Position numbers and translations under genes: made by a program. Under the pieces are notes generated by a model that ran no database searches, was not told where the DNA came from, and saw nothing but the letters and a program-made list of their open reading frames with translations. From Bugula neritina (taxonomy: Eukaryota; Animalia; Bryozoa), in the NCBI GenBank assembly GCA_964035545.1, contig OZ037765.1, positions 4,722,698 through 4,786,697 of the forward strand: DNA of 64,000 nt. Direction: 5' to 3'. Below, piece after piece: positions 22,847 through 55,058 of the stretch; positions within the stretch are counted from its first letter, which is position 1; each line of letters starts with the position of its first letter.

Positions 22847-25800
22847 ATGTCGTTTGTTGGAAAATCCCTTAGCGAACCTACTCATACTGATAGTGATACT
22901 CATACTCATACTGATAGTGATACTCATCCTCATAGCCAGGAAGATTTTTTGGAATTGGAAGTTCTAAAAGTAAAACTTAAAGGTAAGCGTGAGGCTCCGA
23001 CTGAGTCTGAGTGAGAGCTAAACAGTAAATGCCAAATAAGTGTTTAATGTTGTTATATTGAGTACTGGGGGTTTTCAACTACTAAGTACCTAATATAACA
23101 CAGGGTATGCATACAATTAGAATATTCTACATGTGTATAACTATAACGCGTTGATAGTTGGTATCACACTTACCGGTATTATTCTTCTCTTCAGTCACAT
23201 CTGCTTACGACGGACTCTAGTGTACAAGAGATCTGGAATCCTGTACCAAAGCTGCCACGTTTAGACAGAAGGTTCTCTCATTGCTTACTTCTTGTAGCCA
23301 GAGCTCCGTCACTCAACATAAAAGGTAAGGGTACGAAAGTGATAAGTATCTTATAGCTAAAGAGCAAAGTGCTATAATCCTTAGGCTAGAAGTCCTGTTG
23401 CGAAACATCATATATGTGGAAGTATACTTTTAGGGCTAATGTTGTACCATCTCCAATAATTAGTTGTATGTCCTGTATCATGGTGTATAACCTTGTAAGT
23501 GTGTGTCTATTTAATGTTACTGCTATTCTATATAGTAGGCATACACTATGTATGGAAGAAAAGATATATTATAAATGGGGAAAAGATAGAATACATGGAA
23601 GTATTCAATACAAAACAATATTAAGCTCTAACTAAGGTTGCAGGGAAGCAGGATGCTATATCTGTAGTATATTATATTGTAGTGGTATAGCATACAAAAT
23701 GTCAAGTATGAAATAATACTTGAATACATCTATAGCATCCTCCCCAATTTAGAGAAAGACACCTCCGGTGGCTTATGCTTGTTGAAAGCATAAACAATTA
23801 AGCATTACTACTCCGAAATAAAAAAGGAAGAAAAACCTTTCACAATAAAATGAGTAAAATTTGAAAATTATATATACTAGCTGTTATATAGGCCTATATG
23901 TATTCTATTAGTACCAGTGAGTTCATCGATTAGAGTGAGTATTTTTTTTTTATTTCTGGTCACATAATCTTTTTTTTTTTCTCACTCATTTTTTTACATT
24001 GTTCCCTTTTTTTGTAACCATATTTTCATTATTTTTTTTTGATGAACTATATCTGTTGATGAAATAAAAAAAAAAACAAGACTTTAGCTATAAGTAAACA
24101 TTTACTAAAAATACACTAATTATGAATATTATAAACATAAGTCACAGGAGGTGGTGATAACAATCGACTCCGCATTTTATCCAACTTTGAATATTTAAAA
24201 ATTTCGCTTGATTTGATTCAATTTTCCCAATACAGAGCTTACTTAATTTTATTTTAATCAAAAGTCAATTTGATTTCTGCAATTTTTAGTAAGTTTGTTT
24301 TATGAGAAGCCAAAACTGTAGAAGATGTTAACCTGTAATGCTAAAAAAATGTCAAAGTACTCCCCCCTGTGAACAACAGGAAAACTCCTGTGTTCCATTG
24401 AAAAACTTGATTATTAATATGGCAGTAAATATTAGTATATCTGGTATATCTGCATGGTTATGTAAAGTAATGAATCGGGTGTCAATATGGTTATTATGTA
24501 TGTAAGTGTGAAGTAGATAAGCTACTCAATGCTGCTACTAGTACTGGGTATGTCGGCTTCTAGTCATTGCAGTTTCGGATAGAGGGGGCGATATTGCTGA
24601 ATTGAGGATGCAGGCGAAGGAGCACTAGGTGTTGGTCTAGTGTCCACTTCTACCATATCTACGAATTCTGTGAAGCTAGTCTGATCGGAAGCGTCCAGGA
24701 ACCCATCCTGTTCTCCTGCCTCAACATCATTGTCAGATGTGTCCTCTGTGTCCTCAATGTCGATAGCTGCTACAATATTTCTCCTTCGCTGGCAACAACG
24801 ATTGTATAGAAAAATACCTAGCAATGCAATTGACAATATGGTGACTAAACAGTTGGATATCAAAGTCCACAATTCAAACGCACTCGCCACATGCCCTCCA
24901 AACAGGAAAGCAAACCAAGAGTTCCCTATCAAGTTCTCTTTCGACTCAATGACATTGTTTTTAAAGGAAACATGTCTGTTGGATTGAATTCCCATCGCTT
25001 CTAGAACTTGTTTCTGTCTTGACAAAGTAGCTAGCAATTCATTCAAGTCAGAGTGTGCTGACAGGTCAGGCCAACTTAGGTGATGGGCACGGCTGTAGAT
25101 TGTTTCATGGATTTTAAGAGGGTGTGCACCTAGAGAAATTCCAGGTAAACTCAGGTCTTCTCCAAGATTAACCTTTTCTACGGTACCATCTTGGTTGTAC
25201 CAAAACAATTCATCGTTCATCCGGAATGCAATTGCTGGTTTGGATGTGCACGGTGCTTGTGCACTTTGTGTGTGAATAATGTTATCCATTGGATCCATGA
25301 AACCAGTGTGCGTTTCCCCACTGAGTTCCAATTCTACTGGAATAAACATGGTGCAATTATTCTCTGACATAGGGAGCATTTTGTAGCTTTTTATTTCCGT
25401 ACATGGGTAAATCTTTAGAAAACCAGGACCAGACTCAGCTCGGATATTGCTTACCCCTAGTAAGTATCTGGCTGTACTCGTCGCATGTTGCTCTGCGAGT
25501 AGAGCTACGGTTTTGAGGACTTGAACTATGTTTTTACAGGTATATTGATAAGATGTCCAATACAGTTTTGATTCGATTCCGAGAATCTGTACTTCTAGGG
25601 ACTGAGCTATAGCGTCCATGACAGCATATGCTGGACTCAAACGACTCCTGCGGTCCCATTCTAGTCCAGGAGCCTTTTCAACGTGTTGCGTTAGAGTGGT
25701 GTTGAACAGGTCTGAAGTATTAAAAACAACAAGCAAACCTTGGTCCGACATTGTGCCTGACTTGCCGTCACAAGTGGTAATATTCTCAAAGGGGTTCTTG

Positions 25801-28800
25801 CGGAAAGTTAAAGCCAAGTCTTCTTGATCACTAACAAAATAGCCATCAAGGAAACTTCCTTCAACTTCATACCACTCCTCGTATGGACAATTAGCTTCTC
25901 GTTCTGTTTCCCATATTAGCATAGATTGATCTCTGAGTTTGCAGTAGCCATCAGAGTATGAGTTGCAATGGGAAACGTCACCTGCGGTGCTTTCAAAAGA
26001 ACTTTTCCCAAATGTCTTGTATACCGAAGCTGAAATATAACTGCATTGTTTCACTTCAAAGTGATGCCACTTGCAGCACCAAACATAAGCTAATCCTGCA
26101 GCTTTGTTTTTTGTAGTGTATGCACCATCACTTCCAGATAGGGCACCTTCATTGCATCTCTTCTCTAGTACCATATTTTCGCATTCGCTGCGGCTAACTG
26201 GCAGTGACCGGTGATATTCCTTCTTAGTTTTCACGTCCGTAAAAAGTGATATCTGTGTGGAGATGGTGTACAGCATTTTAGTGCATTGATAGGCTGCTGT
26301 ACGCCATTCCACTACATTTTTTCTGTAAACCGTAGCCTTCACAGGGGTTGGCGCATGAGTACTATTGGGTCTTGGAGTCGGATCACATTGGAAGTCATGA
26401 TTCAATTGATGAATAGATGGTCGCCTCACTTCACTGGAACTACACACCAAAGGATACCTGGCATACTGCGGCTGTGCCTTCTGTGTAGTGTTAAAAACAG
26501 TCGTGTTAGACAATGCATTCACTACTGCTGTCAACACTAACACAGATAGTATGCTGGTGAGAGTCTGACTGGCCACAGCTGGCCCCAGGAGAGCTGTGCC
26601 TTTTACTGGTGCAGTGGCTGCGGCTACACTGATCAGCATACACATTGCCACTAGTGCCAACATGTAGGTTTGCATTGTTGACAAACCAGTCCCCCGTCCT
26701 CTGCTTCTTTTTCTTTTGGGTTTCCTGTCAGAGATGAATTCATTTGGAGAGGTTTGAATTGAATTCACTGATTCCTCAGCTATGTCCTCTTGAGGAGGCT
26801 GAGTCAGAAGGGCCTCGGCAAATTCATCACCCTCTAGGCTCTCAATAGCATTGATGTGTCGCGTCCCACTGTAATCTTTGGTTTTGCTCTGTTGACCAGA
26901 GCACTGATTACGTTGTGGTTGCTGGTGAGAGGGTGGTTGAGGTGGGCAGGAAGGAAGTTGTGCTGGTGGGTGAGGGTACCGGGGAGAAGATTGGTAGTAG
27001 GGTTGAGGCTTCCCCTGGTTGAAGTATCTACCTCGTCCTCTTCCTCGGTTTGTTGTTCCTCTCCATCCACCACCTCTACCTCTGTCATTTCTCATTCCAA
27101 ACCCTTGACTCTGTTGTTGGTGTTGTTGGTATTGGGGCTGCCGTTGCTCTTTAGCTTGGTTGTGCACTAAAGTTTTCAACCATTCTACCTCTTTTTCTAG
27201 CTTTTGAACTGAGTCAGATGAGTTTACCGTTGCCACTATTCTCTGGGTGTCATCTCCCATCTGATGTTCTACATTTTCTTGCTTAAGTGCAAGTTTCCTA
27301 GCACTTTCTACAGTTGTGGGGTTTTTAGAGAGGAGGTGCCTCTTCAATCCTGGTCGTAGACCAGTAATAAAAGCAGATACTAGCACGCTATCTTTATGTT
27401 CAAGGGAGAGGTCAGGCCATTGGGTGTTGGCAGCTTCCATAAATTCGCCATAATATTCTAGTACGCTTTTCTTCCCCATCTTTATGTTCCACACTAATTT
27501 GCTTGAGTCGACAAACTCTTTGCATAACCTCTCTCGAAGACTCTTGTAACTAATCGCTAGCGTGGGCTCCTTTGCAACTACTGCCTTGAAAACCTGATAG
27601 GCACCACCTTCCAGGGCATCTGGAAGGTTTTGTGCCATCTGATAATCACTAAGCTGCAGTTTTTTTATGTTCTTTTCCCATTTTTCAAGAAATAACTCCC
27701 AGCTGGAACCAGGAGTTCCTTTAAATTTGATGTTCTGTGGAGGCTCTCTCAGAATAATAGGTGAGTTGTGAAATTTTCCCGCATCAGCTACTCCAATGCT
27801 GTGTTCAGATGGTGTTTCAGCTAAGCTTTGGATTGGTGAGTTATGAGGTTTTGGTGATCGTTGATTAGCAATGTGGGGATAACTTGATGTGAATTCCAAG
27901 GTAGTATTTGTAGGTGTAGGTGCTGGTTGTTCATGAAGTTGTCTTCTACTTGTTTTTCGTGGCGTAACTGGTGGAGGTAGGCGAGTTCGAGGCGGCGGAG
28001 TTGGTTCCGGCATGACATTTGCATCATTGGTAGATCTTTGACCCAAGGTGAGATTCCGAAAATCTTCGAGTTGTTGTTGTAACTTTTGTTGCTGGATTGT
28101 GAGCCGATGCTCTCTTTCCAGGAACTCATTTTGCTGTTGTTCTTGAACAGCGCTCTGTTCCTCATAGAACTTTCTCCGTTGGATTTCAAAACTTTCCTCC
28201 ATCTCGTACCGTCTCCTTGCTTGCTCTTGTCTTTCTACCTCGAGGTGCTGAAACTGTTCCGCCAGTTCATGCTCCTTCGTTTGTTGATACTGTCGCCATT
28301 GTTCTTGCTCATATCTCCATACATCTTTTTGCTTTTCCTGCTCCTCTACAAGTTTCTTGTATTCTAACTCGTAGAACTTTGCAATTTCATGCGGGTTCAT
28401 TGGGAGTCGTCTTTCGGACAACTCAACCAATGCGTGAGCTCCTTCTCTTGTCGAATCTTGTGAGAGAGTAGGAGTGTCTAAGCCCGTGGCTACATTTGTG
28501 GCACTACCTGGTGTCGTAATAGTACTAACACTAGTGGTGACTGTAGTTGTGGCGGTGGTCACGGTTCCGGTACTCATATTGTTGGTGCGTGACTTATAAT
28601 TTCCGACTAATAAGTGAGTTCAGCAGTACTTGTTTGCAATGTTATTAATGTTTATACTTTGTGCTAATGTACAATTATGTGTCTATTTCTTACTCAAGGA
28701 TATGTGTGCATGTACTATCCTGTATATATGACAAGGTGTGGCTTGCAGTTAAATACTTTAAGTTAGTGGAAGTCTTTTATTATGACCTCTGTACACTACA

Positions 28801-31800
28801 AATTATTCAGTTATTTCTGCTATTCAAGCCTAGTCTAAAATCTAAATTTAGTCAACCACAGTAATTAATTAGTTTGATATTCGTACTATGTAGTAAGGCG
28901 GTTGTTGTACTTAGGTACTATAATACGTAATAGGACAATGCTTTGTACTATAATACACTGACTGCACTGCAGGTGTCGCAATACTTAGTACTGCAATGTA
29001 ATATTCGTATAATGTGTAAATATATAATATACAATTCAGTGATGCTCTGATTGGCAATGCACTGCAAAGTAAATTGTAGGTAATTATAAGAAATTATGTT
29101 TAGGACAAGACTATTAATTATAGTACTTGTCAGCGCCTATACCTCAGCAGACAGTCGTAGACTGAATCTGTTTGGAATTTATTAACTGCTAAATAAGGAG
29201 CGTGTTAACCTTATCTGCAGCTCACCCAATTATACAACTAAATTAGCCTATTAGCAAAGGGAGGTAATTCACTTCTACAATTAATTATCTCTAAGCTAAA
29301 AAAAATTAAAACTGGCTTGTTTTCACCTTTTAAGCAGCAGAGAAAAATTAAACATATAGGAATTCTCGCTCTATTACTATTAGTCTATGGATGTATATTG
29401 TTTTGGGGTAATATGTAAAAGTTGATCCTTTTTGGCTTCAATTAATATTTTCTCAGTGCGGCCTAGCACTTCTACGGTCTACCCACGAGCAAAATATGAG
29501 CTCAGCGAATATAAAACCTACAGGAAAATATTAGTGAACAGCCAAATGAGGCCTGATCAACACTATCTAAAGTATTAATATAATTTTATCCCCTGGCGCA
29601 CGGGGTGGTTAACCAAGTGTCAAGAGCTATTAATATAAAGCTGGACACAATATTTAACAAGGGCAACCTTGGGCAAAAGCCAGTGCCTCCTCCAAAATGT
29701 TATATTGAGTACTGGGGGTTTTCAACTACTAAGTACCTAATATAACACAGGGTATGCATACAATTAGAATATTCTACATGTGTATAACTACAACGCGTTG
29801 ATAGTTGGTATCACACTTACCGGTATTATTCTTCTCTTCAGTCACATCTGCTTACGACGGACTCTAGTGTACAAGAGATCTGGAATCCTGTACCAAAGCT
29901 GCCACGTTTAGACAGAAGGTTCTCTCATTGCTTACTTCTTGTAGCCAGAGCTCCGTCACTCAACATAAAAGGTAAGGGTACGAAAGTGATAAGTATCTTA
30001 TAGCTAAAGAGCAAAGTGCTATAATCCTTAGGCTAGAAGTCCTGTTGCGAAACATCATATATGTGGAAGTATACTTTTAGGGCTAATGTTGTACCATCTC
30101 CAATAATTAGTTGTATGTCCTGTATCATGGTGTATAACCTTGTAAGTGTGTGTCTATTTAATGTTACTGCTATTCTATATAGTAGGCATACACTATGTAT
30201 GGAAGAAAAGATATATTATAAATGGGGAAAAGATAGAATACATGGAAGTATTCAATACAAAACAATATTAAGCTCTAACTAAGGTTGCAGGGAAGCAGGA
30301 TGCTATATCTGTAGTATATTATATTGTAGTGGTATAGCATACAAAATGTCAAGTATGAAATAATACTTGAATACATCTATAGCAATGTTAATCTCAAAAG
30401 TTAATAATATTTCAAAGTTTAGTATAAAGTAGAAATAGAATTACTATTAGAAGTAAACTTTTAGTTCTATGTTCTAACGAATAAATATTTATATAATAAA
30501 TATAATAACTCATAAATCATAAGACCTAGTCATAAGTCATAAATGATAATGATAAATATAATCGTTATCAATTTATTCTTTACTCTTTAGGCTAAGCTTT
30601 AACTTTAAGTTTATTATATTATTCATTATTATTTTGATAATCATTATGATTATAGTTATAATTTACATTATCATTATCACTTTATGCATTGTCATTGTGA
30701 TTCAAGATTTAAATCACCATCATCAATTAATATGAATAATATTATGACGATTATCAGTATCACTATGTCTTATACTTATAGTAATAGTTATAATTTATAA
30801 ATAAAAATAAAATATAAGTTAAACTTGATATTATCGTGTTTTCAATACCATTTATTAATTATCAAAGAAAAAGTGAAATTCAATATCATCAACATGAACA
30901 CTACTAGTACTACTAGTAACTGTAAGAAGCATCGTAAAGTTAACCAGAAAAATAAAGTAACATATGATAATAATGTAACTATCACTATGACCAATAAATA
31001 TTATATTTTATTTTGTTACAATTATTAATATTACTAATAGTAATAGTATTGGTATGGCACTTCAACTCATAAAATCACTACTGGATACAATGATTGCTGT
31101 AAAATTAAATTTATTATGGTTATTAATATTAGTATTACTATAACACTAAATATTACATGACTAAGTATATGACTACTACTAGTACTAGGTATAAGTATTA
31201 TCGCTACACTATGAGGATGTATATCAAACTGCTGCTTTTAATATTAGTATTACTTATACTATTGGTAATAATAGTATTGGTATGATTTGCAGCATGGGTA
31301 TCCTGCATTATTTTTAGATATGGCATTTCCATTTTTAATGCATAATGCGTATAGTATCAGTATGTTTGCATTTTCACAGATGTTGAAGAGAGCACCAATC
31401 ATGTTCTTGGCCTAGTAGAATCTCTTGGGTAAGAATTTTTTTATAATCTTTTAATAATATTTTAAAATTTCATACTTTTTTTATTAATATTGTCATAACT
31501 TGTAAATAAAGATATTACTGGTAACATAAATACTGTTGTTAACCTATTTATTTCAAGCTCAAACCTTATTTAATTATTTATTTGCAGCCCTTCCCTGACA
31601 TCATTAGATACAGAAACTCGTGCAAGTGCTACACAATTATTGGCTGACGATATAAGCAATTCGAAAGGGTTGAGGCGGAACGACCTTGAACCATTAGCAG
31701 ATTTCTTCTGTGACAGAATCAAAGATCATCACTCTATTGTTCCACATGTTCTTACAGCATTCTCTACCCTGGTAACATAATGTTATAATTAGCATATCTT

Positions 31801-33100
31801 CATAGAAGGGCATAGAAAAGTAAACTGCCTTATAGAGTAAAAGACATGTCATATGACTTGGATTTTCACACAGACTGCTAGCGAAAACTTGGACTGTTTT
31901 TTCAATTTCTATATCTATTCAAAATACTGATTGGATACTATGGAAAGTTATTGTGGAAAATAATTGATAAACTAACTACTCAATTCTAAGCTACTCCATT
32001 TTTCTCATTCAAATTTCCTGTTCATATTTCTTTCATATGCATATTATCGAGAATGGTTAATTTAAATATTATATGCCAGTTTCTATGAAGCATGTAAAGC
32101 GGTACACTTTGCCATTCTTGCAACATAAGAGTAAAGTGGTGCTCTTTTCAGATTAATATACAATACAGTAGCCTAATATCTGTAGTTTCCTAAAATAGAC
32201 TGTAGTCATAATGTCTGTAGTGTTATTCTAGGCTGGTAGGTCTGATCTACCCGATGCTTCAGCAGTCTCCATCGTCCAGTCCATGTTTCAACATGGCGAG
32301 GTGCAAACTCTCAGTCAGCAACATCGAGCCTCTGCATTCCAGACTCTAGTGAATCTGTTTCATCTCAAGTTGGAAGGTAAACTGTCATTCTTAGTAACAA
32401 TACAGGTCTCTCTGTGTGTAGGATATTAGTGCAGTAGAATACGTTATCCTCTTGTAATAAAAGCAATTATTGGCCATTGTTGCTTTAGTTGTGTTACTTA
32501 TTTTGGTAAACTGTGATTATTAATGATACCTAGTTTTTTTGGTTAACTCTAGATGTTATATGCGTTCACTTGTATTAAAAAGTAGTTATATTTCCAATGC
32601 TGAATGCATGTATAAATAGTACAAGGATGTTGCTGTGTAGTTTATGAGATACTTTCTGTTTTCAGTGCTGGTCATGCTAAGAGAGTCGTTCACTCTTGGA
32701 TACACTCAAATGATTTTTCAGGAAACAAACCCTAGAAACCTCCTGACTATCTCTGGTCTTACAAGAATAGTTGTCAACAACTTTCCTATTGGTTAGTTTA
32801 TTTTTACCAATTTTCCTATTGATTAATTTACTATTGACCTGACCTGTTAAGTTTGAAATCAAAGTAAAAACTAATCAAATGTTGAAAACATTCAGGTGAC
32901 TATTTGAAAGAATTATTCTGGGTGACATCTCGTGGCTTTCCTATGGACTCCAGTGACTTTCATATGTACTCCATTCGGGTGAGTTTTCATATTTTAAACT
33001 GATGAAATTTTTACCTTTTATACATTTCATAATGTGTCATAGTAAATCACTGTTGTCTATTTTTTAAGCAGGGGGTGGGGTAGGAGGTTCCATATGCAAA

Positions 33101-33141
<41 letters not shown>

Positions 33142-34199
33142 CAAGTGTTGGTTAGATCAAACTTTTTTTGCTTTTGAAAATACAATTAAAATAGACGAAA
33201 GTATTATTTTGCAATGACAATGACTATGCAACAGTTGAATTATGTTTCTATAAAATAAAAATATGGTTAAAGATATAAATACTTTTTAATATATTTATAT
33301 TGGGTACACTCTCATAAAATAGAAGGATTATTCACAGCATGAATAAGGTCAACCTCCAACTAATTTTAAACAGAACCCCTCAAATAAAACAAAAACAAGT
33401 ATCAGCCAGAAGCTAAATTTGAAACTCATCTTAGAGGCTTATTAAAATTTTATTTAAAACTATTTTTCATCTTTTACGCCTCATAAGCAGCATACAGGTA
33501 ACATAGGGTAACATGCCTCCAGAATTACTCCTTCTGCTAGCTTTTGAAAGATTATATCAGTAGTATCCTAAAATATTGTTCTTGGGAGCATTTTGATTTT
33601 CAGCAATGGGTTTGTTGTGAATTAAGGATTTATGAAAGCATTTCCAAAGATGTGTGTCCAACTTTCAGTGGTTACACCTATTAACTTCTTAGGTAAACAT
33701 GGCAGGGCTAAGCTAGTAGGTTTGTCTTTTGTTACATGTTCTTTGTTGCCCAACACCCTTTCTACTTGGAATTTCAAGTCAAGGAGTGTTATTTAGTGGC
33801 TTGAAGCTATAATTTCTGGTTGCACCGGCTCTGGTAGCTGTTAATTTCGGGTTATGTCTAAGAAGCTTAGTGCAATAAGTTTGTAAACACTGTTATTTAT
33901 TTCTGAAGCCTAGAGTAAACGAAAGAGACCACAAATTGTTCTTTTGTATTTATTGACTAACCTTACGTAACAATTCACCTACTCTTGTAATAGAAAAGGC
34001 CACAGCTCTACCTCTGCCTAGCTGCTATTGCTCTAGCTTGGTCTAGTCTTAAACTAGTTAGTAGTTTATTAAAAAGCACATAGATCACCTTTAAAGCACG
34101 TTTGCTAAAAGTCCAAGGCTAAACTTTGAAGAGAATGACCTAATAGTTACACATCATATGACCTTCAGCATGCTTTATGCTCTAATAAAATATAAGTAT

Positions 34200-34242
<43 letters not shown>

Positions 34243-37200
34243 TTCTGTTCTATGTTATAATGTCATGCAGCCTCCAAAAGCCTCTCTCCTGGTTTTACGG
34301 CAGCAGTTAATAGAGCAACAAAGAGCCACACTATCATCTACCCACATGTTCTCTCAATACTGCCTGAGTATGATCACCCGCACTATGGCAATAAAATGCC
34401 ATACAGACAAACAAAACTTGCTGCAGACGCTGGTGAGTTCTTGTCCTTCCTGTCTACTCACTTGGGACTCTCTTGTTAGAGCATCAGTTTTAAACTTTTG
34501 TAAATCACTAGTTCAATAGACAGTCAATTCAATCTCAATCCATTTGTTGTATATAATGTATCACTCTGTGAGAAAATTGATATAAAAGTTTGTAACGTTG
34601 GTAAATATGAAGTTTTATCAAAGTTTTCCTAACATTTATTTGTGTCATGCTATGATAACTCCTTGCTGGGCAGTTTTCTTTCTACATTACTTGAAGTTCA
34701 ATATAATGGGATGTATCCATGTCTGTTGATGTGATTTCATGCAGATAGACTGCTGTAAAGTATACAAGGCTGAACACTTTAGACCTTTTACCTCCCGTCT
34801 GTCACAGCAATTGGTAAGGGAAGCAGCAGGTGGGATAATTAGAACTCAGGAGCTGGCACTAAAGGCTATCTCTGTCATCTGCAGCTGTTTAGCTCAACCG
34901 GTAGGTAATCATAAACATGTTTTTATGATTTAATTTTGTCATCCAGTAATAAAAGTTTTATCTATATATATATTATGCAGTCTGCCATTGTCAACTTTTC
35001 TAAGACTTGACACTTCTCAAATTATGTTCTCAACTTGGTGGATGATTCTAATTGGGAAGTTGCAGCAACATATGTAGTTAGTTGTAAGCATGTTATTGCT
35101 GAATTCTGAGCCCTGTTTTAGCAACCCAAAATACTAAGTGGAATAATATTAACTAATCTTTTGACTTTGTGTCTTTGTTACAGTTTTGAAATTTATGGAA
35201 TAGAGCTACAAGATAAGTTGTTTCTTAAAAGAAAAGTTGCCTTTGAAACGAAATTCTATTTGATTTACTGTTCACAAGAATGTGAACAGTAAATGTTGAA
35301 CTGGTTCACATTCTATTCATTTGGACACTAATTTATTGAGGCTGCTTTTTGTTGAATAGTAAAAGGGTGTGTTGGTATTATATTATCTTATATGTTACAG
35401 ATTGATGGAGTCACTGTGTACACAGATGTTGATCACTTCTGTACATATGCTGTCAAAGGTTTGTCTCTCAATAAACTATTTGTTGTGACCAACTACTTTT
35501 AATTATTATAATTGCCTTGCATGACGAATAGTGTTGTAACAGTAAAAGCTTGTAAAAACTATTTTTGCTTTCCCTACTCAGGAATTATTTTTCAACATTT
35601 GGTTGTATGACTTTGCACTTGAGATAAATGAGCAATCCACCATTACAGATGTTTTGCCACAACACCACTTGTACCTAGCCCTTTCTTTACCACCTAGCAC
35701 CTTTCATGGTTAGAATATTTGAACTATATACTGCTTACTGACAATCCATACATGAATAGTGCCTAGTGTGACGCCACTGCCCTTCCAAGCTATTGCTACT
35801 TTTATATGCTTGATGGGTTGAGATGGTATTTACAACTTATTCAGCTGTTTTAGCATTACTTTAACACAGCAATAAGGTTGCTACCATATCTCTACCATTA
35901 TGGCAGTCATGTATATATAGCTGAGTACATATGTACTAACTTTCTGTAGAATGCATATGCCAGTTCCGACAGTTTGCAAATCACAACGTGGACAAGGTCA
36001 GGTCAAGTGTTCGAGTATTGCAAACATTACTCTCGACCAATCAGCATGCAGCTAACTTAGTTCTGGCTGATGTAATGCCAGTAATACTAGAAACACTGAA
36101 TACTGGACAGCAGGTAACTGTATAACTAGCTTCACTTAGGCTATACATATCTATAAACCTATTGTAGACTGGCCACATGTAGAGCATGTAATAGAACTAA
36201 TAACAATTACCTTGAAACTCTAGTGCACATAAGTTGAATGGCAATAAACACTGGCATTTACTCCTGCCACCCTAACAGGACAAAACAGAAGATAAGTGAG
36301 AAAAAACCCTGGTAGTTACTGTATTTAAGAAGATGTGGTAACAACCTGTTAGCTGAGTATGTTTGTCAACATCTGGTTAGTGTTCTCAAAGGTTGGCTTG
36401 GCTGGGAATGTTGTGCCATCTGGATAGACAATGGGATAAGGCATGCTTACTTTGTTTACAAGACTTGAGATTAGTTTTCCTCTGATGGACTACTACCTAT
36501 TCAATAGGCAATCCCGGGCTTTCCATGAATCGATCTGAGAAATGTGCTCAAATCGTTTTTCCATGAGAGTGTCAGATCGATCTCCGAAGTTACCTCCTCT
36601 TAAGTGAAAGATCCTTTAACAGTATAATTTGCCGACCCATCTGACTGATTAAAGCTACTGCTGTCAAAAAACAAGATTGTTGCAGTCTAAAAATTAACAC
36701 CACCTATAAACTATACGTGGAGTAAATTGACCAATTTATGATAATCAATTTTAATTTTTTAGCTTTACAGCGTATATAAAATTAATAACTGTCTTGCAGA
36801 TTATTCATAAACTTACAGGATTGTTAGGCTTGAAATTACGAAGCAAATAGCTAATGAAAGTAAGTTTTACTAGTCGTTTAAATTCAATTTAAATGCTCCC
36901 ATTTTTTGTACCTTCTACTGCCTATAATTTTATATAATTGAGTTTTCTTAATCAGTAGTACTGAAAGTCAAAGTTTTGGCATCTGAAAATGTGGCTATTG
37001 TAATTATTTAGTACTTTGCTTAGTAATTAACAATAAGTTATCATTTTTATTAGCAGACGACATTTTAGCGAACAGTCTTTTTCTACTTCTCAGATCGATC
37101 TTTCGTTTTTCCATGGTCTTATTGCCTTGAGATCGATCTGAGTTCGAGCTCTACAGACCGACCAGCTCAGAACGACTGAGATCGATCTTTGGCATCTTTC

Positions 37201-37807
37201 CATGGATCGATCTCAGCGAGATAGATACATAGAGAGCTGGTGAATTAAAGCAAGTCTCTACAAACCACTGCTCTTTCTTACTAAGAATCTTGCTGACCCA
37301 AACTGCTGCACTATTTAATTTTATTCAAATATGATGAAATGATTACAAAGGAATCTATCAACAGTATTCAGATTTATTGATCTGCTGTAAACTATCTAAT
37401 GAAGTTTAAAGAGTTTGTTATTCACTCGTTACTTCTACATCATATATCCAGCTTTACTGGCGATGTTCAACCTGAAAAAAAAACTTGTACTCTTCACTTT
37501 TTTTAAACCAACTTGAAAACTCGAAACAATATTGGATGAATTTCAGGTGAATGACCAACGACCTATTACCGTAACATCTACTCACACATGTATATATGTA
37601 TATAATCCTGTTATGTTGTAGACTGGAGAAAAGTGTATATACTTGGAGATGATAAGAGACCTTCTGTCCAGCAGTGTAGGCAATGTACATGCTCACAAAG
37701 TGTCAGCTTTGGATACAGTTAGCGAGCATACGAGACACTCCAAGGAGGCAGTGCGCAACTCAGCATTACGCTGCCTTGTTGTACTGGCAGATGTTGCCCG
37801 CAGCTAA
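22847..37807 (+). CDS. MMS19 paralog (copy 2), N-terminal half only, ~482 aa: exons 22847-22982, 31380-31428, 31588-31771, 32232-32376, 32666-32791, 32896-32978, 34271-34432, 34745-34900, 35401-35458, 35950-36113, 37622-37807 (TAA); terminal-exon homolog from 38159
   Basis: Eleven exons align to copy 1 with intact splice sites and phases; indels before the stop are multiples of 3; AAA>TAA in exon 11. Functional gene or recent pseudogene cannot be decided from sequence alone. Confidence 0.7.
23051..23737 (-). repeat. 3' LTR
   Basis: Matches 29698-30384; only one substitution noticed (ctaTaacg vs ctaCaacg). Confidence 0.96.
23738..23745 (-). other. Polypurine tract GGGGAGGA
   Basis: Immediately precedes the TG of the 3' LTR on the minus strand. 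Confidence 0.8.
24564..28577 (-). CDS. 1337-aa Gag-Env polyprotein: coiled coil, Ty3/gypsy-type capsid, RGG region, internal signal-like segments, class III viral fusion glycoprotein, TM anchor and tail
   Basis: Capsid-like KFKG..WELFLEKWE..LEGGA..SYKSLRERL..SVLEY..FITGL; Cys-rich ectodomain with AYQC..VSRSEC (rhabdovirus-G-like) and ARYLLG..IRAESGPGFLKIYPCTEI / C..FIPV..GFMDP (gB/chuvirus-G-like); NxT sites; C-terminal TM. No PR, RT, RNase H or IN motifs. Confidence 0.85.
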   Translation of the reverse strand: MSTGTVTTATTTVTTSVSTITTPGSATNVATGLDTPTLSQDSTREGAHALVELSERRLPMNPHEIAKFYELEYKKLVEEQEKQKDVWRYEQEQWRQYQQTKEHELAEQFQHLEVERQEQARRRYEMEESFEIQRRKFYEEQSAVQEQQQNEFLEREHRLTIQQQKLQQQLEDFRNLTLGQRSTNDANVMPEPTPPPRTRLPPPVTPRKTSRRQLHEQPAPTPTNTTLEFTSSYPHIANQRSPKPHNSPIQSLAETPSEHSIGVADAGKFHNSPIILREPPQNIKFKGTPGSSWELFLEKWEKNIKKLQLSDYQMAQNLPDALEGGAYQVFKAVVAKEPTLAISYKSLRERLCKEFVDSSKLVWNIKMGKKSVLEYYGEFMEAANTQWPDLSLEHKDSVLVSAFITGLRPGLKRHLLSKNPTTVESARKLALKQENVEHQMGDDTQRIVATVNSSDSVQKLEKEVEWLKTLVHNQAKEQRQPQYQQHQQQSQGFGMRNDRGRGGGWRGTTNRGRGRGRYFNQGKPQPYYQSSPRYPHPPAQLPSCPPQPPSHQQPQRNQCSGQQSKTKDYSGTRHINAIESLEGDEFAEALLTQPPQEDIAEESVNSIQTSPNEFISDRKPKRKRSRGRGTGLSTMQTYMLALVAMCMLISVAAATAPVKGTALLGPAVASQTLTSILSVLVLTAVVNALSNTTVFNTTQKAQPQYARYPLVCSSSEVRRPSIHQLNHDFQCDPTPRPNSTHAPTPVKATVYRKNVVEWRTAAYQCTKMLYTISTQISLFTDVKTKKEYHRSLPVSRSECENMVLEKRCNEGALSGSDGAYTTKNKAAGLAYVWCCKWHHFEVKQCSYISASVYKTFGKSSFESTAGDVSHCNSYSDGYCKLRDQSMLIWETEREANCPYEEWYEVEGSFLDGYFVSDQEDLALTFRKNPFENITTCDGKSGTMSDQGLLVVFNTSDLFNTTLTQHVEKAPGLEWDRRSRLSPAYAVMDAIAQSLEVQILGIESKLYWTSYQYTCKNIVQVLKTVALLAEQHATSTARYLLGVSNIRAESGPGFLKIYPCTEIKSYKMLPMSENNCTMFIPVELELSGETHTGFMDPMDNIIHTQSAQAPCTSKPAIAFRMNDELFWYNQDGTVEKVNLGEDLSLPGISLGAHPLKIHETIYSRAHHLSWPDLSAHSDLNELLATLSRQKQVLEAMGIQSNRHVSFKNNVIESKENLIGNSWFAFLFGGHVASAFELWTLISNCLVTILSIALLGIFLYNRCCQRRRNIVAAIDIEDTEDTSDNDVEAGEQDGFLDASDQTSFTEFVDMVEVDTRPTPSAPSPASSIQQYRPLYPKLQ
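29680..29697 (-). other. Primer-binding-site-like sequence TTT-TGGAGGAGGCACTGG
   Basis: Starts with TGG 3 nt after the 5' LTR; its complement ends ...GUGCCUCCUCCA. Confidence 0.6.
29698..30384 (-). repeat. 5' LTR
   Basis: Direct repeat of 23051-23737. Confidence 0.96.
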
Positions 37808-39506
37808 CTACAAGAAGTCTGTCAGCCATTGTTACTTGTTAGACGTGGTCACGAATTCTGAGTCTATCTCTGTAAGGTAATTTGTACTGTCAGTGTGGTA
37901 CTAGTAGTAGTACTAGTAATAGTAGTGGTAGGAGTAGTAGTGGTAGTAGTAGTAATAGTAGTAGCAGTAGTACTAGTGGTAGTAGTAGTAATAGTAGTAG
38001 CAGTAGTACTAGTGGTAGTAGTAGTAGTAGAAGTACTAGTGGTAGTAGTAATAGTGGTAGTAGTAGTAGGAGTAATAGTAGTAGTGGTAGTAGTAATAAT
38101 CACAATACTAACAATCAGGTAATCCAGTGCATTGAGTGATGTGTGTTTTCAATTCTAGGTGCATGGTCAACAATAGACACATAAGTTATCACTGTTTACT
38201 TTCACTCATTGTAATATTTTCATTTTTTTACAATTTTCAGAACTATAAGTATTTTTTCCCCATTAATCATAGTTGCATTGATTAAACTTTTTGATAGACC
38301 GATTCACCTTTTCTAGTTTTGATCTGGAAATATTAGAGTAATTTTCATGATGGCTGTTCACTTTTAGTTCCTATTTTGTACACTTGTAAAAAGTTAATCA
38401 ATAAATTTCTTGCTCACTCTTGATTCATTATTTATACTTGAAAATAAAATTGTGTCTAAAGTTTCAATAAACTTTTCTTTTCAATTAAGAAGCTTAAAAC
38501 CACTCATTTGGTAATAGAAAACTCAATATTGGATATGAGAACATAACTCTTAGTGCGGGTGTGGAAAACTGTATTTTTCACTTGGCTGATTACAATTTTT
38601 TAACAAAATATGCTGTCAACAACTATTAATTTTGTAGAGTAAAAGTTATTGTTTGTATAGTTGCTAGTATATTGAGTAGTAGAGTTGTTGGTGTGATTGG
38701 TAGTGATATATAGTACAATGCTGTCACTATAGTATATAGTATACAGTTACTATAGTTGATAGCATACAGTTGCTAGTATAAGTGTTAGTCCTATGATTGA
38801 GCACAAAGGGTGACTCGTTACTCAATCGGCTGACTATTTAGAGGCCTCAATTTCACTGGTGATTCATAACTTGTAATCCACACGATGAGCCCAACCAAGC
38901 TGGTCACATATGCCACTGCTACCACCATGATGAAAGCCCACGTGCTTATTACGGGCCTGTCACTCTCCGCTCTTCCTCAAAAAAAGGAGACTATGCTAAA
39001 ATTTATCTTTCAACGTAGCATGTATTATGTTTGAGCAAAGCTGTTGGTCATTTCACCAATTTTCAGTTCATATATAAAATTCACATTAAGCCTGCAGAAA
39101 ATAAGTCAGCAAATACTAAAAAATAGTAATATTTTCCTAAAAAATATTTTCTATAAGTTGTGTTGTGTCAACTATAACATTATATCATACATATAATATT
39201 ATTATACTATATATGTTTTAACCAAAATATTTTAAGAGTTGATGCTAAAGAAAGTTAAAAATTTGAATGAATTATTTCTGCTTAAGTTCAACAAAGTTGC
39301 TGGTTGAAATAGTCAACACTTGCATATTCAGTTCAATACCATCTCATCTGTATTGTATCGTAGCATTATTGCTATACAGGTTTTAAGAGATAAAGCTTTG
39401 TAAAACTTTTTTGATGAAAAATTAATGTTTTGGACTCTCTCTTTACTAAGGAAAGAACATACCTGCCATACTTCCATTACTACAGACCAAAATACACGCA
39501 CTTCCT

Positions 39507-40330
39507 ATGTGCTTTTCAAGACAAGAAAAGCCGCCTGAACTTCATGACAACATACTTAAAGTTTTACAACAAGACTTTGAAACGGAAAACACAAGCCTTT
39601 CTATAGATGATAGAAAGTTAGAGAACGAAATCCACAAGAATGAAGCTGGATTTATAGCTTTGCCACTCCCATTGAAAACACTTCTACAATCTGCTAAATC
39701 ATCTAGAGCAGTTGCACTTCACCGGTTCAGCGAGTACAGGAAACAGTATACTGGTTTTATGATAAGTATCATTGACAGAGGTGAAGCAGAGCTTATACCA
39801 CAATTAGAAAAGGGAGAAGGATGATATTTACCTAACTTCATCCTAAAAAGCCTAACAAGATTAGAGTCGTTTTTGAGGCAAGTGCTAAAGCTAATGGCAT
39901 ATACCTCAAGGACCATCTACTTGAAGGACCAGCACATATGAACAGTTTGCATTAAAAAACTATATTATGTTATGTTATTATGGAATAATATTATATTTCA
40001 CAATTTTTATGTTGAACCGAAAAGCCATAGAAACTACCTTAAGTTTTTCTGGTTTTCTGAAGGGAAAGTAGTAGAATATCAAATGAGAGTGCAATTATCT
40101 CCAGCATGGGTTAAGACATCTTGCTGCTACTAGTGGAAACAATGATGTCCAAAGATTCATTCACAACATTTTTTATATCGACAATGGTTTTGTGGGTGTA
40201 AGTGGTGCAAAATTAGCCCAGCAGCTTATTCAGGAAGCAGTGAAAACTTGTAGCTGTGGTGGACTTCGACTTCACGAGTGTGTTTCTAACAGTTCAGAAG
40301 CTCTACAACAATTACCAGAATCTGAAAACT
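39507..40330 (+). mobile_element. Degraded BEL/Pao retrotransposon pol fragment
   Basis: LPLPLK..ALHRF..Y..FM..IIDRGEAE, then YLP..PKKPNKIRVVF and DHLLEGP in shifted frames. Confidence 0.75.
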
Positions 40331-43300
40331 ATCAATTTGGTGCGATTTGTTCATGTTTTTTTATGTTTATTCATGCAGGCAGACTGCTGTAAAGTATTCA
40401 ACTCTGAACACCTTAGACCTTTTACCAATATTATGACACAGCAATTGTTACGGGAAGCCATGCTCTCAAGTAGAACTGAGGAGCTGGCACTAGAGGCTAT
40501 CTCTGCCATCTGCAGCTGTTTAGCCAAACCGGTAGGTAATTGTTGGGACATGAGCTTGGAAAGCTTGTTGAATAATTACAGCTTTACTTGTATTATTACA
40601 GCTATGTTAGCTACATTATGGTTTTTTTTTCTATTGGGATGCAATGATTTTGGCTACTGCAAAATAGCTATCTTTTTAAACTGTTATGAAAGCTATTCAT
40701 TCTCTTTTCTTTCAGTCTGCGATAATAAACATACATCTATATATTGAAACACAGCAGTAATCATAAAAATATTCTTATGATTTAATTTTTTTCATCAAGC
40801 AGTCACTGAATTTTCGTTGCATTATTTAAATTGATGCTTATATGGTTGTGGTTTCTAAAAACGAGAGAAAAATTAGAAGCTTGGAAACGTAGCGATTAAA
40901 AGATATATCTTTATTCTCAGTCTTTAGTCCGCCATTTTTAAACTTTCTTAGACTTGAAACTTGCAACATATAAGGAGTTATAATATACAGTAAAATGTAG
41001 CTGCAGGTTAATGTACATTATGCTTTTCTCTATTGTGATACAATGATTCTCGCTACTGCAAAATAGCTGACTTTGTAGAACGTATAAAACTCATCACTTT
41101 TCATTATTCATTCTCTTTTCTTTCAGTCTGTGGTAATGAGCATACATCTATATATTAAAACACAGCAGTAATATGAAAATAGTTTTATGTTTTACCTTCT
41201 TCATCAAGTAGTGACTGCATTTTCGTTGCATATTATGCAAATTGATGCTTATATGGTTGTGGTTTCTAACAAGCTTGGAAACATAGCGATTAAAAGATAT
41301 ATCTGCATTCTCAGTTGAGTTTTATGATGGTAAGTCTGTCGTGTGCTATTTTTAAATTTTCTTAGACTTGAAACTAGTGAAATAAAAGTTAGTCTTGGAA
41401 AGAAATTATGTTTGATTTACTGCTCACAAAATTTATTTGCGTGTTGTAAGGTAGACGTTAAATTGTTTCAAATTTCCTTGTTGTGACTACTAAGTTGTTG
41501 AACCTGTTTTGTTGGATCCTCTCTGTTATGTTACAGATTGATGGAGTCACTGTGTACACAGATGTTGATGACTTCTGTACATCATAAGAGATCTTTTGTC
41601 CAGCAGTGTAGGCAATGTATATTCTCACAAAGTGTCAGCTTTGGATACGGTCATCGAGCATATGAGACACTCCAAGGAGGCAGTGTGTGAGTCAGCGTTA
41701 CGCTGCCTTGCTGAACTGGCAGATGCTGCCGGCAGCAAACTATATGAAGTCACGCAGCCATTGTTAGACATGGCCACCAATTCTGAGTCTACTGCTCTAA
41801 GGTAATTTGTACTGTCAGTGTGGTACTGATGATAGTACTGGTAGCAGTAGTACTAGTGGTAGGAGTAATAGTGGTAGTGGTAGTAGTAGTAATACTAGTG
41901 GTAGTAGTAGTTGTGGTGGTAGTCATAGTAATAGTAATAGCGGTAGTGGTAGTAGCGGAAGCAACAGCAGTACTAGCAGCAGTAGTAATAATAGTAGTAC
42001 TAGCAGTAAAATTAGTTAAGGTAGTAGAAGTCTTATTAGTCATAGGACCAGCTGCAGAATTTTAATTCATGATAGCGGCATCATTTACTAGGCATGAAAC
42101 TCAGTAGTAGGAGTTGTCTTCTGCCGCCAGGTCACTACTCTAATGTGTTTTGTATGTAGAAATACGTCCAGCCTTTGCCTAGCTGCTCTCTGTAAGCACA
42201 ATGAAGAGGCCAGAGATGAAGTGATATATAAAGCCCTTCGCTCACCTCTCGTAGAGGTTCATACATTGGAGTTGTCTACTCTGAATATTCTAGATGCTAT
42301 AGTCGCACAATGCAGCTCTGATGTACGTCTGTATGTGCTAACGCAGCTACACATCTCCTTTGAACAGTGTCCACCAGGTAAAATCTTGTTTTACCTCATT
42401 TGTTTTCTCCTGCAACTAAATTAAACTGAGGAAGCTTAAAATAACTTTTTGTTATAATCAACAAAACTGAGTGTTACTTCCCTCACTATATTTGTAGTCC
42501 TCTAGGGTTAAAGGATAAGTTCAATTCTACTTTCAACATGCTTATAAAAGTAGTTCTCCTTTGCTAATTTTAACTGTTCATCCAAATGTTGAAGTTGTAT
42601 GCCCTCTTCAGAGTTCAATTGTAAATGAATAATATTTAACTGTTCAATTTAATAAAACCATACAGTTTGTAACTGATTCATCTTTCAAATAAGTTCTTCG
42701 TTTTTCAACATACCTGCTGTGTAGTTGTTGTGAGCTATTGGTATGAAATACTGATAACTACAGGTTATATTGGTAAGCATACTCATCATTCTATTACTGT
42801 CCACTGCTACTAACTAACTGTTTGCAGCAAGTACGCATCTCCTCACTGAAGTGTCTAGCCACCATGTCTAAACTGACCACCCTCCTCATCGTACCTCACA
42901 TGAACTCTGTCATCAAGCAACTCCTTCCTGCCCTTGATGATAAGAAACGTCTAGTCAGAAAAGAAGCTGTCAAAACTAGAAATATTTGGTAAGATTTTAT
43001 CATTACACTCTCCTATTTCCCCACTTCGTCATCAACTTAATGTTTTCATTAATATTGAGGTGCAGTAGGTTCATTTCTTGTTGGTCGCCTTGTGCTCTTT
43101 TTTAAAATGCACAAATATGGATATTGTTGTTATATAAAAGACACTTTAAGCTGAATTTACCAAACTGTATGTGGGTGTGTAGTGTAATAAACTATTTTCA
43201 CGTTTCCAAGTATCTAAAAATCTAGGTCTATTTCAATATTAACAATCAATTTATTCCATGTTTGTTACTTTAGTAGTTGTGTGTTTTCAATTCTAGGTGC

Positions 43301-43345
43301 ATGGTTAGAGATGGAAATGAATCTCACTGAAGAGAATTTTTCTAA
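40330..43345 (+). pseudogene. MMS19 copy 3, internally deleted: exon 8, exon 9 fused into exon 11, exon 12, then exons 20-21
   Basis: Highly similar to copy 1 including introns; no 5' exons; deletion junctions at ~41584 and ~42380-42420. Confidence 0.88.
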
Positions 43346-43637
43346 TTGTTACCAAATTAATACTTTGGGTGAACAAATGTACTGACTTTGGTAAAGTAAA
43401 AACTCATAAACGGCATGGCTACCTCCAAACAGAAGCAACTACTGCTTCCAGTAAAATTACGTTACCACTAATAAACCCTAAAATTGCTTCACCCACTTGA
43501 TCTGTGCCTAATTTATTTATAATTATGACATTATCTTGGGCCTAAAATTTTTTGAAAACACATTCACAAGTATAAAACATTAGAACAAAGTTTTCCAATT
43601 ACTATTTTAGAAAACGAAGTGTCGGAAATGTTGAGTA

Positions 43638-45355
43638 CCGTAAAATGGGGTAACATTGGCCGTTTTGAGACAAATTTTGGGTGTCATATGAAAGGATTAC
43701 AATATTCTTTAAAATTTTTGGATGCTAAATGAAGCTTATCAACATATGCACTAAATGAAAGAACCTTTTGCAGTTTGGGACTGCTAGATCTCCTGTGGTA
43801 TTAAAAAAAGTAGGTGGCCAAAGTTACCCTATTTTCGGGGTAACTTTGGCCGGTGTCGTTATTCTCCATGTAGCTAAAGTTAGCAGCACTTGGAGCTTTT
43901 TTAGCCAGTTAGAAATTAAAGAACAACATTATTCAACTTCATTACTACAAAAAAAAATTATTTTAGACAAAATGCAAGCTATAATAGTGTAATTATTGCA
44001 TTGAAACCACAGCTATTCGACGTACATTGTTATTAAGTGTAAAAACTTTTGTATATGTATAAAAAATCAGGTATTTTGCTGGCAACATTGAATAAATCAC
44101 TGTACAAGTTCAAATTTCATTGAATTTAATTTTAAATTCAAGTATGCCCTTTCAAACTATAGGCTGTAACAGTTGTCTGTAGATTTTTTAAATAATGCGT
44201 AATGTCTTCAGAATTAACTGTTGCCCATTCCGGTGCTATGTTTTGGCACAACCTGTGAGACAAGCTATCTTTATGTCTTGACATAAAACTGAGACTCCAG
44301 TGATCTTGAGGGTAGTTGCTTTTGAAATGTTGCACTCTTCTCTCACATTTGTCAAAATAGGTCTTGACTATTATTCGAAAGTCTGTTTTATCTAATGGAA
44401 AGCCCCATTGAGCCAGCTTTGTAGTAGGTATGGTCAACAATGGCTACCTCCTCTACTTGTGAAAACACAGTTTGGCGTCCAGGCTTCAGCTTGTGTCTTC
44501 ATGCGGCTCTGTTTTGTAGTGTTCCTTTAGTAATATCATATTTCTAGCCACTTCTTGTCAAGACTTTCCAGCTGCCAATTCTTGTGAATAAAGCAAAACC
44601 AATGATCTCCTCAGATATGCCATATCTTGGAGATATTACTTTTCTTTAATATTTTCTGAGTATAATTGTCTTGAAAAATACATTTTACAATGCATGGTCA
44701 AATTCTTAAATAAAAAAAAACATTAAACACAAAATTGCTGTCTGGGAACAAAAATGTATAATTCCCCATGTAATTATTTCATATTTCGGACTCTAAGTTG
44801 TTTCAAATATATAACTAGAGCATTGGGTATAGGTGAATCAAATGATTGTGCCTTTAGAGAGTAATGTACTATGTGTCTGAAGGAACAGAAAATTCGCAGC
44901 GCTGCCAGAAACCTACTTTGGAGTACCATTTAGTCATGGCCAAAGTTACCCCAAATTCGTCAAAAATTGTACACAGTGAATTCAAGACACATATTTTAAT
45001 TTTGAATTTCAATTTATTTACCTAAATTACAAATATCCTGGTTAAATACTTACCAAAGTTCTTTAATACAAAAAAGAAAATGAGTCCAGCTTTTCTAATG
45101 CCTTCAAATAAATTAAAGTTGGACAGCGCTGAAAATCTTGTTGTCAAACAGGAAATTGAAAATGGCTGACAGCAAGAAGCAGCAAATAAGTATATGAATT
45201 ATTTTTCAGGAATAGGATGCACCAATCTGCAGTCAGTGCATATATACAATTAAAATATCTTTAGACTTCATAGATATAGCACCAGCTACATTTTAAACAT
45301 TTTTTCCAAAGTGGCCAAAGTTACCCCAAGTGGCTAAAGTTACCCCATTTTACGG
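43638..45355 (-). mobile_element. Non-autonomous pogo-like (Tc1/mariner superfamily) DNA transposon
   Basis: TIR CCGTAAAATGGGGTAAC at both ends, TA TSD, repeated subterminal GGCCAAAGTTACCC motifs, CENP-B-type HTH remnant (WGFPL..W...FMSRH) at 44138-44440, no DDE domain. Confidence 0.88.
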
Positions 45356-45735
45356 TAGTTAAAACTTTTTATTAGCAAAACTGAATTTTCAGCTATAAAA
45401 CTTTTTAATCAAAATTCTGAGGCTCTACACTCATAAAATAAAAATTATGATACTAAAAGAAAGCGAAAGTCTGAACCTCTGCAGCCTTCTTTTCATCAGT
45501 TCTAACACATTCATTACTTTCACTTCTTGCCCTATGCTTTTATTATTTTTGTGTTCTTCGAGAGTAATTCCTAGGCAGTAACACGGCATTCTCATCTCCC
45601 ACACTAGCTTTTTTCGCAAGGTAATCAGTCACTGGCCATGTTTCAGCTTTGTACAGTAGCACCGGTCGTATCACTGTCTTGTAAATGAGCACCTTTTGTT
45701 TTTTTGGGACATTCTGGTCACATAAACATCACTGT

Positions 45736-54049: not shown

Positions 54050-54175
54050 CCATTGAACTGCACTATAGTATAGTTTAAAAACATCTACAGTGTTTCTTGC
54101 ATTTCTTCCTGATTTGCCACTTGTCCATTGTGTTTCCTGCAAGCATAGTATGTGTATTTTTTCTTCATCATACCT
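54050..54175 (-). mobile_element. LINE AP-endonuclease fragment (also ~47780-47910, 50300-50409)
   Basis: KIHILCLQETQW..GKS..AR...FKLYYS. Confidence 0.65.
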
Positions 54176-55052: not shown

Positions 55053-55058
55053 TAGGTA
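55053..55058. other. Transposon excision footprint TA-GG-TA
   Basis: Same site is TA at 49001 and TA-[element ending ...CGG]-TA at 43636-45357. Confidence 0.75.

Follow-up and report, generated by a model that had tools for sequence, protein, structure and literature searches.

To our knowledge, MMS19 is normally a strictly single-copy, slow-evolving housekeeping gene. The stretch of Bugula neritina DNA analyzed here (64,000 nucleotides of contig OZ037765.1, positions 4,722,698 to 4,786,697; hereafter the window) is part of a 216-Mb, AT-rich animal genome and holds three MMS19-derived stretches (copies 1, 2, and 3), the second of which raises the question of what becomes of this gene when only its 5′ part is duplicated. 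A first-pass annotation of the locus had answered that recurrent positive selection on HEAT-repeat surfaces drove the heavily changed patches in copy-2 exons 5-10 and made a rapidly evolving binder or decoy out of a scaffold. The results described below lead us to favor, on balance, another answer, namely that copy 2 is an expressed, truncated, and partly constrained paralog that has shed the ancestral constraint on MMS19; the positive-selection account now appears rather doubtful.

Structure of the MMS19 duplicate

Splice sites and phase were used to position exons 1-11 in copy 1 and in copy 2. Homology and family searches for copy 2 were run on single exons, and a joined, spliced copy-2 model built from the window coordinates was used for translation, codon counts, and local comparison with four relatives' contigs. 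The two genes are arranged as follows (LTR, long terminal repeat).

5838-17634, + strand: copy 1, the complete parental MMS19 and the genome's single full gene; PF14500 matches exon by exon, mouse MMS19 of 6TC0
5838-5907, 6827-6875, 7081-7264, 7704-7848, 8167-8292, 8427-8488, + strand: copy 1 exons 1-6 (splice sites, phase)
9290-9451, 9787-9945, 10754-10811, 11284-11438, 11782-12029, + strand: copy 1 exons 7-11 (splice sites, phase)
up to ~17631, + strand: copy 1 later exons (C-terminal open reading frames, typical C-terminal end)
22847-37807, + strand: copy 2, tandem 5′-only duplicate of MMS19; 11 exons, ~480 codons
22847-22982, + strand: copy 2 exon 1 (alignment to copy 1 5771-5963; ATG and donor GT intact; +66 nt in frame)
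23051-30384, no strand assigned: LTR retroelement in copy-2 intron 1; 7.3 kb, two 687-nt LTRs 99.85% identical
31380-31428, 31588-31771, 32232-32376, + strand: copy 2 exons 2-4, a block ~95% like copy 1, introns included
32666-32791, 32896-32978, 34271-34432, 34745-34900, 35401-35458, 35950-36113, + strand: copy 2 exons 5-10, in frame, with patches of heavy change
37622-37876, + strand: copy 2 exon 11, the last exon; in-frame TAA at 37805-37807, then a 7-bp insertion at 37829-37835

Copy 1 contains the family motifs common to the outgroups, and the closest named full-length MMS19 proteins are those of a nemertean and amphioxus. Copy 2 is a tandem 5′-only duplicate of this single gene. Its homology begins ~70 nt 5′ of its ATG (22775) and stops near 38100, within a triplet microsatellite. 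The first-pass annotation had correctly placed the start of exon 5 at 32666 and the end of exon 10 at 36113, and its description of intact splice sites and of indels in multiples of three was accurate: AG/GT dinucleotides are present at all copy-2 exons 1-11, the reading frame stays open up to the end of exon 10, and the net indels are +21 (exon 6), -3 (exon 8), and +9 (exon 10). To this description we add the TAA in exon 11, the 7-bp insertion, the missing C-terminal half, and the LTR element in intron 1, which is young because its two LTRs are nearly identical. The copy-2 transcript continues beyond the former exon-11 donor. Having lost the C-terminal half of MMS19 (~480 residues versus ~1000), copy 2 is predicted to encode an 11-exon, ~480-residue N-terminal HEAT-repeat protein ending in exon 11.

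Exon 1 also contains an in-frame repeat expansion coding for Thr, His, Asp, and Ser (22883-22948), by which the N terminus is 22 residues longer than that of copy 1. The possibility that copy 2 is a haplotig or an assembly artefact was rejected, given its ~20% divergence, its different structure, its presence in a DNA run, and its synteny in a relative's contig (both described below).

Selection on the conserved and diverged parts of copy 2

As the annotation had noticed, exons 2-4 of copy 2 were nearly identical to those of copy 1 (95-98% nucleotide identity). In this block the nonsynonymous divergence (dN) was 0.018 and the synonymous divergence (dS) 0.11-0.13, giving a dN/dS ratio (omega) of 0.13-0.17, and dS equaled the local intron divergence. 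Five nonsynonymous versus 11 synonymous changes were counted, a result that argues against a neutrally evolving copy 2 (p=0.007). Purifying selection acts on exons 2-4, the opening ~150 codons of copy 2.

For exons 5-10, the pairwise omega was 0.90 (NG86), 0.95 (LWL85), 1.14 (YN00), or 1.19 (maximum likelihood), with a bootstrap interval of 0.60-1.29 for the NG86 estimate. The changes were polarized over 215 codons using L010, a contig of copy-1 type from a more distant relative, as the outgroup. Amino-acid changes specific to copy 2 numbered 52 versus 5 for copy 1, and third-position changes were 16 versus 15, so a single neutral rate is common to both copies; from the polarized counts, copy 1 has an omega of ~0.19 and copy 2 one of ~1.5, which does not differ significantly from 1 (p=0.09). 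A branch model was then applied to four sequences (L010, copy 1, copy 2, and L007, the relative's copy-2 contig) using our own GY94-type script. It yielded an omega of 0.05 for the background and 1.18 for the copy-2 clade, and a single ratio was rejected (likelihood ratio test 93.8, p=3.5e-22). Since neither the clade value (p=0.35) nor the stem omega of 2.4 (p=0.16) was distinct from 1 while the background stood at 0.05, constraint was lost and adaptive evolution is unproven. Exons 5-11 of copy 2 have shed the ancestral MMS19 constraint, with an omega of ~1-1.2 versus 0.05 in the background.

The same lineage supplies evidence in favor of recurrent positive selection. On it, the frequency of change at replacement positions was 1.5-1.8 times that at third positions, with 68 versus 16 resolved changes (p=0.003), or 80 versus 23 when unresolved sites were apportioned (p=0.01), counts that rely on parsimony and on a saturated outgroup. 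The stem omega points the same way, as does a maximum-likelihood pairwise omega above 1 despite the constraint on copy 1. However, omega was significantly greater than 1 in none of the clade, stem, and polarized tests, it was 0.65-0.96 between copy 2 and its ortholog, and copy-2 changes were not significantly enriched at conserved columns (p=0.21). Differences between the paralogous exons were clustered (index of dispersion 2.3, permutation p<0.0002), but within the patches synonymous change was raised as well (proportion of synonymous differences, pS, 0.41 versus 0.19) and the three codon positions were used equally, as in an age mosaic or under clustered mutation. The raised pS is better accounted for by older unconverted segments or by mutation in clusters than by selection on the protein alone. 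The claim of positive selection on the patches was therefore not upheld; by the annotation's own rule, under which a dN/dS near or below 1 speaks against the claim, it is unproven because dN/dS lies near 1.

Exon and intron divergence

The annotation had based its claim on exon 7, in which 26 of the 54 residues were said to differ from copy 1. This count was exact and corresponds to 46 of 162 nt (28%), and the flanks were much less diverged, at 1.4% in the last 100 nt of intron 6 and 13% in the first 100 nt of intron 7 (Fisher p=1.5e-6), a local contrast that favors positive selection at this exon. The broader statement that exons diverge faster than introns held at exon 7 but not region-wide: mismatches made up 134 of 712 aligned nt in exons 5-10 (18.8%) and 357 of 1925 in introns 5-9 (18.5%; p=0.87), where gaps occupy more than half of the alignment columns. 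Interiors of introns 5-9 diverged by 20.7%, with ~60% gap columns, and the intron flanks (<=60 nt), at 13.5%, were the sole intron part below the exons (p=0.012).

Identity between the two copies formed a mosaic. In a block spanning exon 2 to the beginning of exon 5, exons and introns alike were 90-100% identical, whereas beyond that point near-identical stretches were interleaved with unalignable ones, so that divergence was ~5% in the 5′ block and ~20-25% in the remainder. This pattern suggests that the similarity of the intron ends may reflect patchy gene conversion with copy 1 together with constraint on splice-proximal sequence.

Several other sources of the patches were considered and rejected. 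Base composition (GC 45.3% versus 43.7%; 62 strong-to-weak versus 50 weak-to-strong changes), CpG counts (19 versus 11), and the transition-to-transversion ratio, which was ~1 in both exons (68:66) and introns (190:224), showed nothing unusual, and mutation bias was rejected because they reveal no special mutational process. Templating from another paralog was rejected because genome-wide DNA and protein searches for exon 7 returned copy 1 and copy 2 only. Compensated frameshifts were rejected for the exon-10 patch, where a gapped alignment was ~43% identical by eye, and for the second patch of exon 7, which contains no indel.

Transcription and a second lineage

Two public runs contained the stretch: X1, an RNA-Seq library deposited under the label of a symbiont metagenome, and X2, a DNA run that covers it like the source genome; the read evidence consists of assembled contigs from a relative's lineage. 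X1 contigs matched copy-2 exons 7, 8, 10, and 11 with 91-95% identity, and spliced joints with GT..AG ends were found exactly at the exon 7-exon 8 and exon 10-exon 11 boundaries. The exon 8-exon 9 joint was one base off (printed TA..GA, with one ambiguous letter) and fits a GT..AG boundary. Depth at the joints was 60-277 versus 4-7 for intron contigs, and none of the three joints was present in the DNA run X2. The exon-11 contig was gapless over 37620-37891, extending 15 nt beyond the old donor as expected of a last exon. The annotation had regarded a lack of expression as evidence against its view; copy 2 is transcribed and spliced, although the transcripts are those of a related lineage.

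A word search with copy-2 exon 7 identified a single protein of 66 residues, encoded by a JGI metagenome contig of 3.7 kb (L007). L007 is the orthologous genomic sequence of copy 2 from a relative: the two are colinear from intron 6 to exon 11 and onward into the beginning of copy 3, and exons 7-11 of L007 have the same lengths, AG/GT sites, TAA, and 7-bp insertion. The search for the paralog in a relative, which the annotation had proposed, thus recovered exons 7-11 with their stop and splice sites. Since all 32 of the listed X1 variant letters were the L007 letters, the X1 RNA derives from the L007 lineage. A metagenome scan for copy 2 in more distant relatives, made with exon 3, returned four contigs, all short and all of the copy-1 type. 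Intron 10 of copy 2 in the window also contains a high-copy repeat (36540-37330), at which the summed contig depth reached ~100,000 in the DNA run versus ~120 in the flanks; because it is absent from L007, this repeat was inserted after the lineages split.

Copy 2 and L007 differed by 7.1% in exons and 6.3-8.5% in introns, and there were no indels in the exons versus 16 events in 1686 nt of intron (P of none 0.001-0.03). Within exons 7-11, codons that were MMS19-like at the ancestor of the two orthologs were replaced in 15 of 166 cases (9%), while those that had already diverged were replaced again in 17 of 71 (24%; Fisher p=0.003). The former were slow relative to a neutral expectation of 14-20% (p 0.04 to 1e-4), and the latter were at or slightly above it (p 0.016 to 0.24). 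Synonymous change at conserved codons was normal (9.3%), indicating that recent conversion has not wiped out differences there. This heterogeneity among sites looks like that of a protein with constrained plus free or selected sites, unlike dead sequence. The rate of repeated replacement would be expected under recurrent positive selection, but it rose above neutral only under the lowest neutral estimate. We infer that the fast sites of copy 2 are mostly released rather than demonstrably adaptive, and that copy 2 is probably translated.

Conserved motifs, domains, and possible function

All three motif rewritings quoted in the annotation, including DGEKDPRN to FQETNPRN, were found as described. 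When the two copies were aligned to eight MMS19 proteins from animals and to a closer relative, the family state was seen in copy 1 and the changed one in copy 2, and the motifs rewritten in copy 2 were DGEKDPRN, CYFPxDFxP, LEKxxSD...AKxDS, and ECKHHLxEPE. Of 55 family-conserved residues kept by copy 1, 24 were replaced in copy-2 exons 5-11. The PF14500 scores of single exons in copy 2 and copy 1, respectively, were 37.7 and 44.8 bits for exon 3, 22.3 and 24.8 for exon 4, 16.4 and 38.8 for exon 5, and 18.0 and 60.0 for exon 7; exon 3 of copy 2 still exceeds the cut-off of 26.7. Copy 2 contains neither the MMS19_C domain (PF12460) nor the CIAO2B-binding last HEAT repeat, and a whole-genome profile search gave a single MMS19_C match, in copy 1 at window positions ~15490-15690.

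MMS19 combines C-terminal docking with an N-terminal client patch (10.1101/2020.02.01.930206, PMC5993189); its last HEAT repeat alone binds CIAO2B (10.1101/2020.02.01.930206), and an N-terminal fragment binds XPD by itself (PMC5993189). Because copy 2 is without the docking repeat, has 24 of the 55 conserved residues replaced, and scores lower in Pfam, it is no working adaptor for iron–sulfur (Fe–S) proteins, and the same losses make a simple client decoy doubtful. Copy 2 would presumably be unable to deliver Fe–S clusters.

HEAT repeats 1-3 stay conserved in copy 2, and any activity would most likely be exerted through their surface. If copy 2 is active, we tentatively suggest that it may act via HEAT 1-3 as a free solenoid of N-terminal repeats, for instance modulating the partners of full-length MMS19 or competing with them. 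The engineered MMS19 "fragment A" (Odermatt and Gari 2017, PMC5993189) is like copy 2 in that it is an N-terminal HEAT piece without the MIP18/CIAO1-binding end, and since fragment A bound XPD alone, an N-terminal-only protein can have a partner. In contrast to fragment A, copy 2 is natural and heritable and its N-terminal patch residues are altered; binding of XPD or another client by copy 2 therefore cannot be assumed. A more elaborate proposal seems distinctly unlikely to us: that copy 2 is an adaptively evolving protein, independent of the cytosolic Fe–S protein assembly (CIA) targeting complex, in which HEAT 1-3 engages an MMS19 partner while the former client-binding patch is repeatedly rewritten, so that it serves as a lineage-specific modulator or decoy of Fe–S client handling, possibly in conflict with a mobile element, virus, or symbiont.

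Retention of the reading frame

Copy 2 might instead be a transcribed pseudogene, that is, a relic spliced from inherited signals whose open frame reflects luck and conversion repair from copy 1. We examined how probable such retention would be. When the observed base changes were re-dealt over the exons, the probability of obtaining no stop was 0.003-0.03. Gaps in multiples of three accounted for 30% of the 204 intron gaps, whereas the exon indels were all net multiples of three, with the exon 1 expansions in frame too, and all 40 splice-site nucleotides were intact (P~0.02). The joint chance of an open frame, such indels, and intact splice sites was ~1.7e-6. As this value is conditional on the differences now present, conversion repair does not explain the open frame.

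Disabling mutations and a loss of frame and splice-site conservation are typical of pseudogenes, but the 480 codons of copy 2 are open, its AG/GT sites are kept, and L007 has the same stop and exon lengths. Nor was omega ~1 throughout: exons 5-11 averaged ~1, whereas exons 2-4 were constrained at a dS that matches intron divergence. The slow MMS19-like codons with their normal synonymous rate, the absence of exon indels between copy 2 and L007, and the stop common to two lineages likewise argue against a relic. Together with the spliced RNA, these results agree with the annotation in that copy 2 is not a dead copy in neutral decay, and we regard the pseudogene explanation as improbable. A retained frame and expression would also be expected under positive selection.

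Several observations nevertheless weigh against our preferred reading of copy 2 as an expressed, partly constrained paralog. The average copy-2 omega near 1 also fits a gene without function, and so does the even distribution of differences over codon positions, both between the paralogs (65/54/57) and between copy 2 and L007 (16/17/18). The most conserved motifs of the family have been destroyed, and much of the Pfam signal has gone; read in the parental frame, exon 11 contains a stop as well as a frameshift, nothing remains of the C-terminal half, and a young 7.3-kb LTR element occupies intron 1 in this genome. These features are also those expected of a pseudogene, and the evidence for an open frame from the ortholog data alone is weak. 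The RNA evidence comes from a relative's contigs rather than from the window's individual and is silent on translation. No X1 contigs were found on exons 5-6 (32624-33015) at 90% likeness, a gap that may have been caused by higher divergence of the lineage, exon skipping, or a filter gap. In addition, the branch model is a script of our own with a saturated outgroup branch, and gene conversion was deduced from the mosaic pattern rather than from a formal conversion test.

Other features of the locus

The third MMS19-derived stretch lies directly 3′ of copy 2.

40327-43359, + strand: copy 3, an internally deleted, younger MMS19 fragment, ~92% like copy 1

Copy 3 comprises exons 8 and 12, the last exons, and a fusion of exons 9 and 11 created by a deletion; its placement directly 3′ of copy 2 is also seen in the relative's contig (L007:3115-3731). 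A reverse-transcriptase-like open reading frame (40087-40389) lies directly upstream of it. In all three copies, an (AGT/GGT)n-like triplet microsatellite is located directly 3′ of exon 11 (12048-12216, 37893-38100, and 41820-42060), and its length varies among the copies and between the window and L007.

Two arrays were found in introns of copy 1. One, at 14326-15502, comprises ~58 tandem 20-bp units that are 95-97% alike and show a strong C-over-G skew; it is open in several frames and generates a spurious 427-residue open frame entering the MMS19_C exon. The other is a minisatellite at 16694-17298 with a 34-bp unit in ~12 copies. A second minisatellite (3170-3814) has a 21-bp unit in ~21 register-shifted copies. 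The region 43200-57500 is a nest of direct repeats, 92-97% alike and spaced ~2.5-6 kb apart, which also match 17874-18962, just 3′ of copy 1.

Discussion

Exons that diverge more than introns between paralogs, as the annotation had claimed for copy 2, are known from the accelerated evolution of snake-venom phospholipase A2 genes. Copy 2 resembles these genes at exon 7, where 28% exon divergence adjoins intron ends with 1-13%, and in having replacement changes concentrated on one copy. It differs from them in that the effect is not region-wide, omega is not significantly greater than 1, and synonymous sites within the patches are also raised. In the primate red and green opsin genes, introns have been homogenized by gene conversion while exon differences persist, and the retained differences are a few tuning sites. 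The identity mosaic of copy 2, with its conserved 5′ block, its diverged or unalignable remainder, and near-identical intron ends beside divergent exon patches, is similar, whereas the exon changes of copy 2 are rewritten motifs, and conversion is here only deduced.

The system from which copy 2 derives by tandem duplication is MMS19/Met18, the adaptor of the CIA targeting complex (PF14500 and PF12460; 6TC0). The layout of exons 1-11 is alike, and exons 2-4, which encode HEAT 1-3 including FFCDRIKDHH, are almost unchanged. Unlike this adaptor, copy 2 comprises about half of the residues, is without MMS19_C and the last HEAT repeat, has its motifs rewritten, and evolves at an omega of ~1.2 instead of 0.05. 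No publication describing a naturally occurring truncated paralog of MMS19 came up in a literature search for MMS19 paralogs.

If copy 2 were merely a long-lived transcribed relic, it would be ordinary. On the reading favored here, it would represent a natural N-terminal-only MMS19 that cannot dock on CIAO2B–CIAO1 and that, in at least two lineages, has stayed open, spliced, and under partial constraint, as well as a clean case of a scaffold shedding its ancestral constraint after partial duplication. If translated, copy 2 would provide a natural separation-of-function allele for the N-terminal repeats of MMS19 alone.

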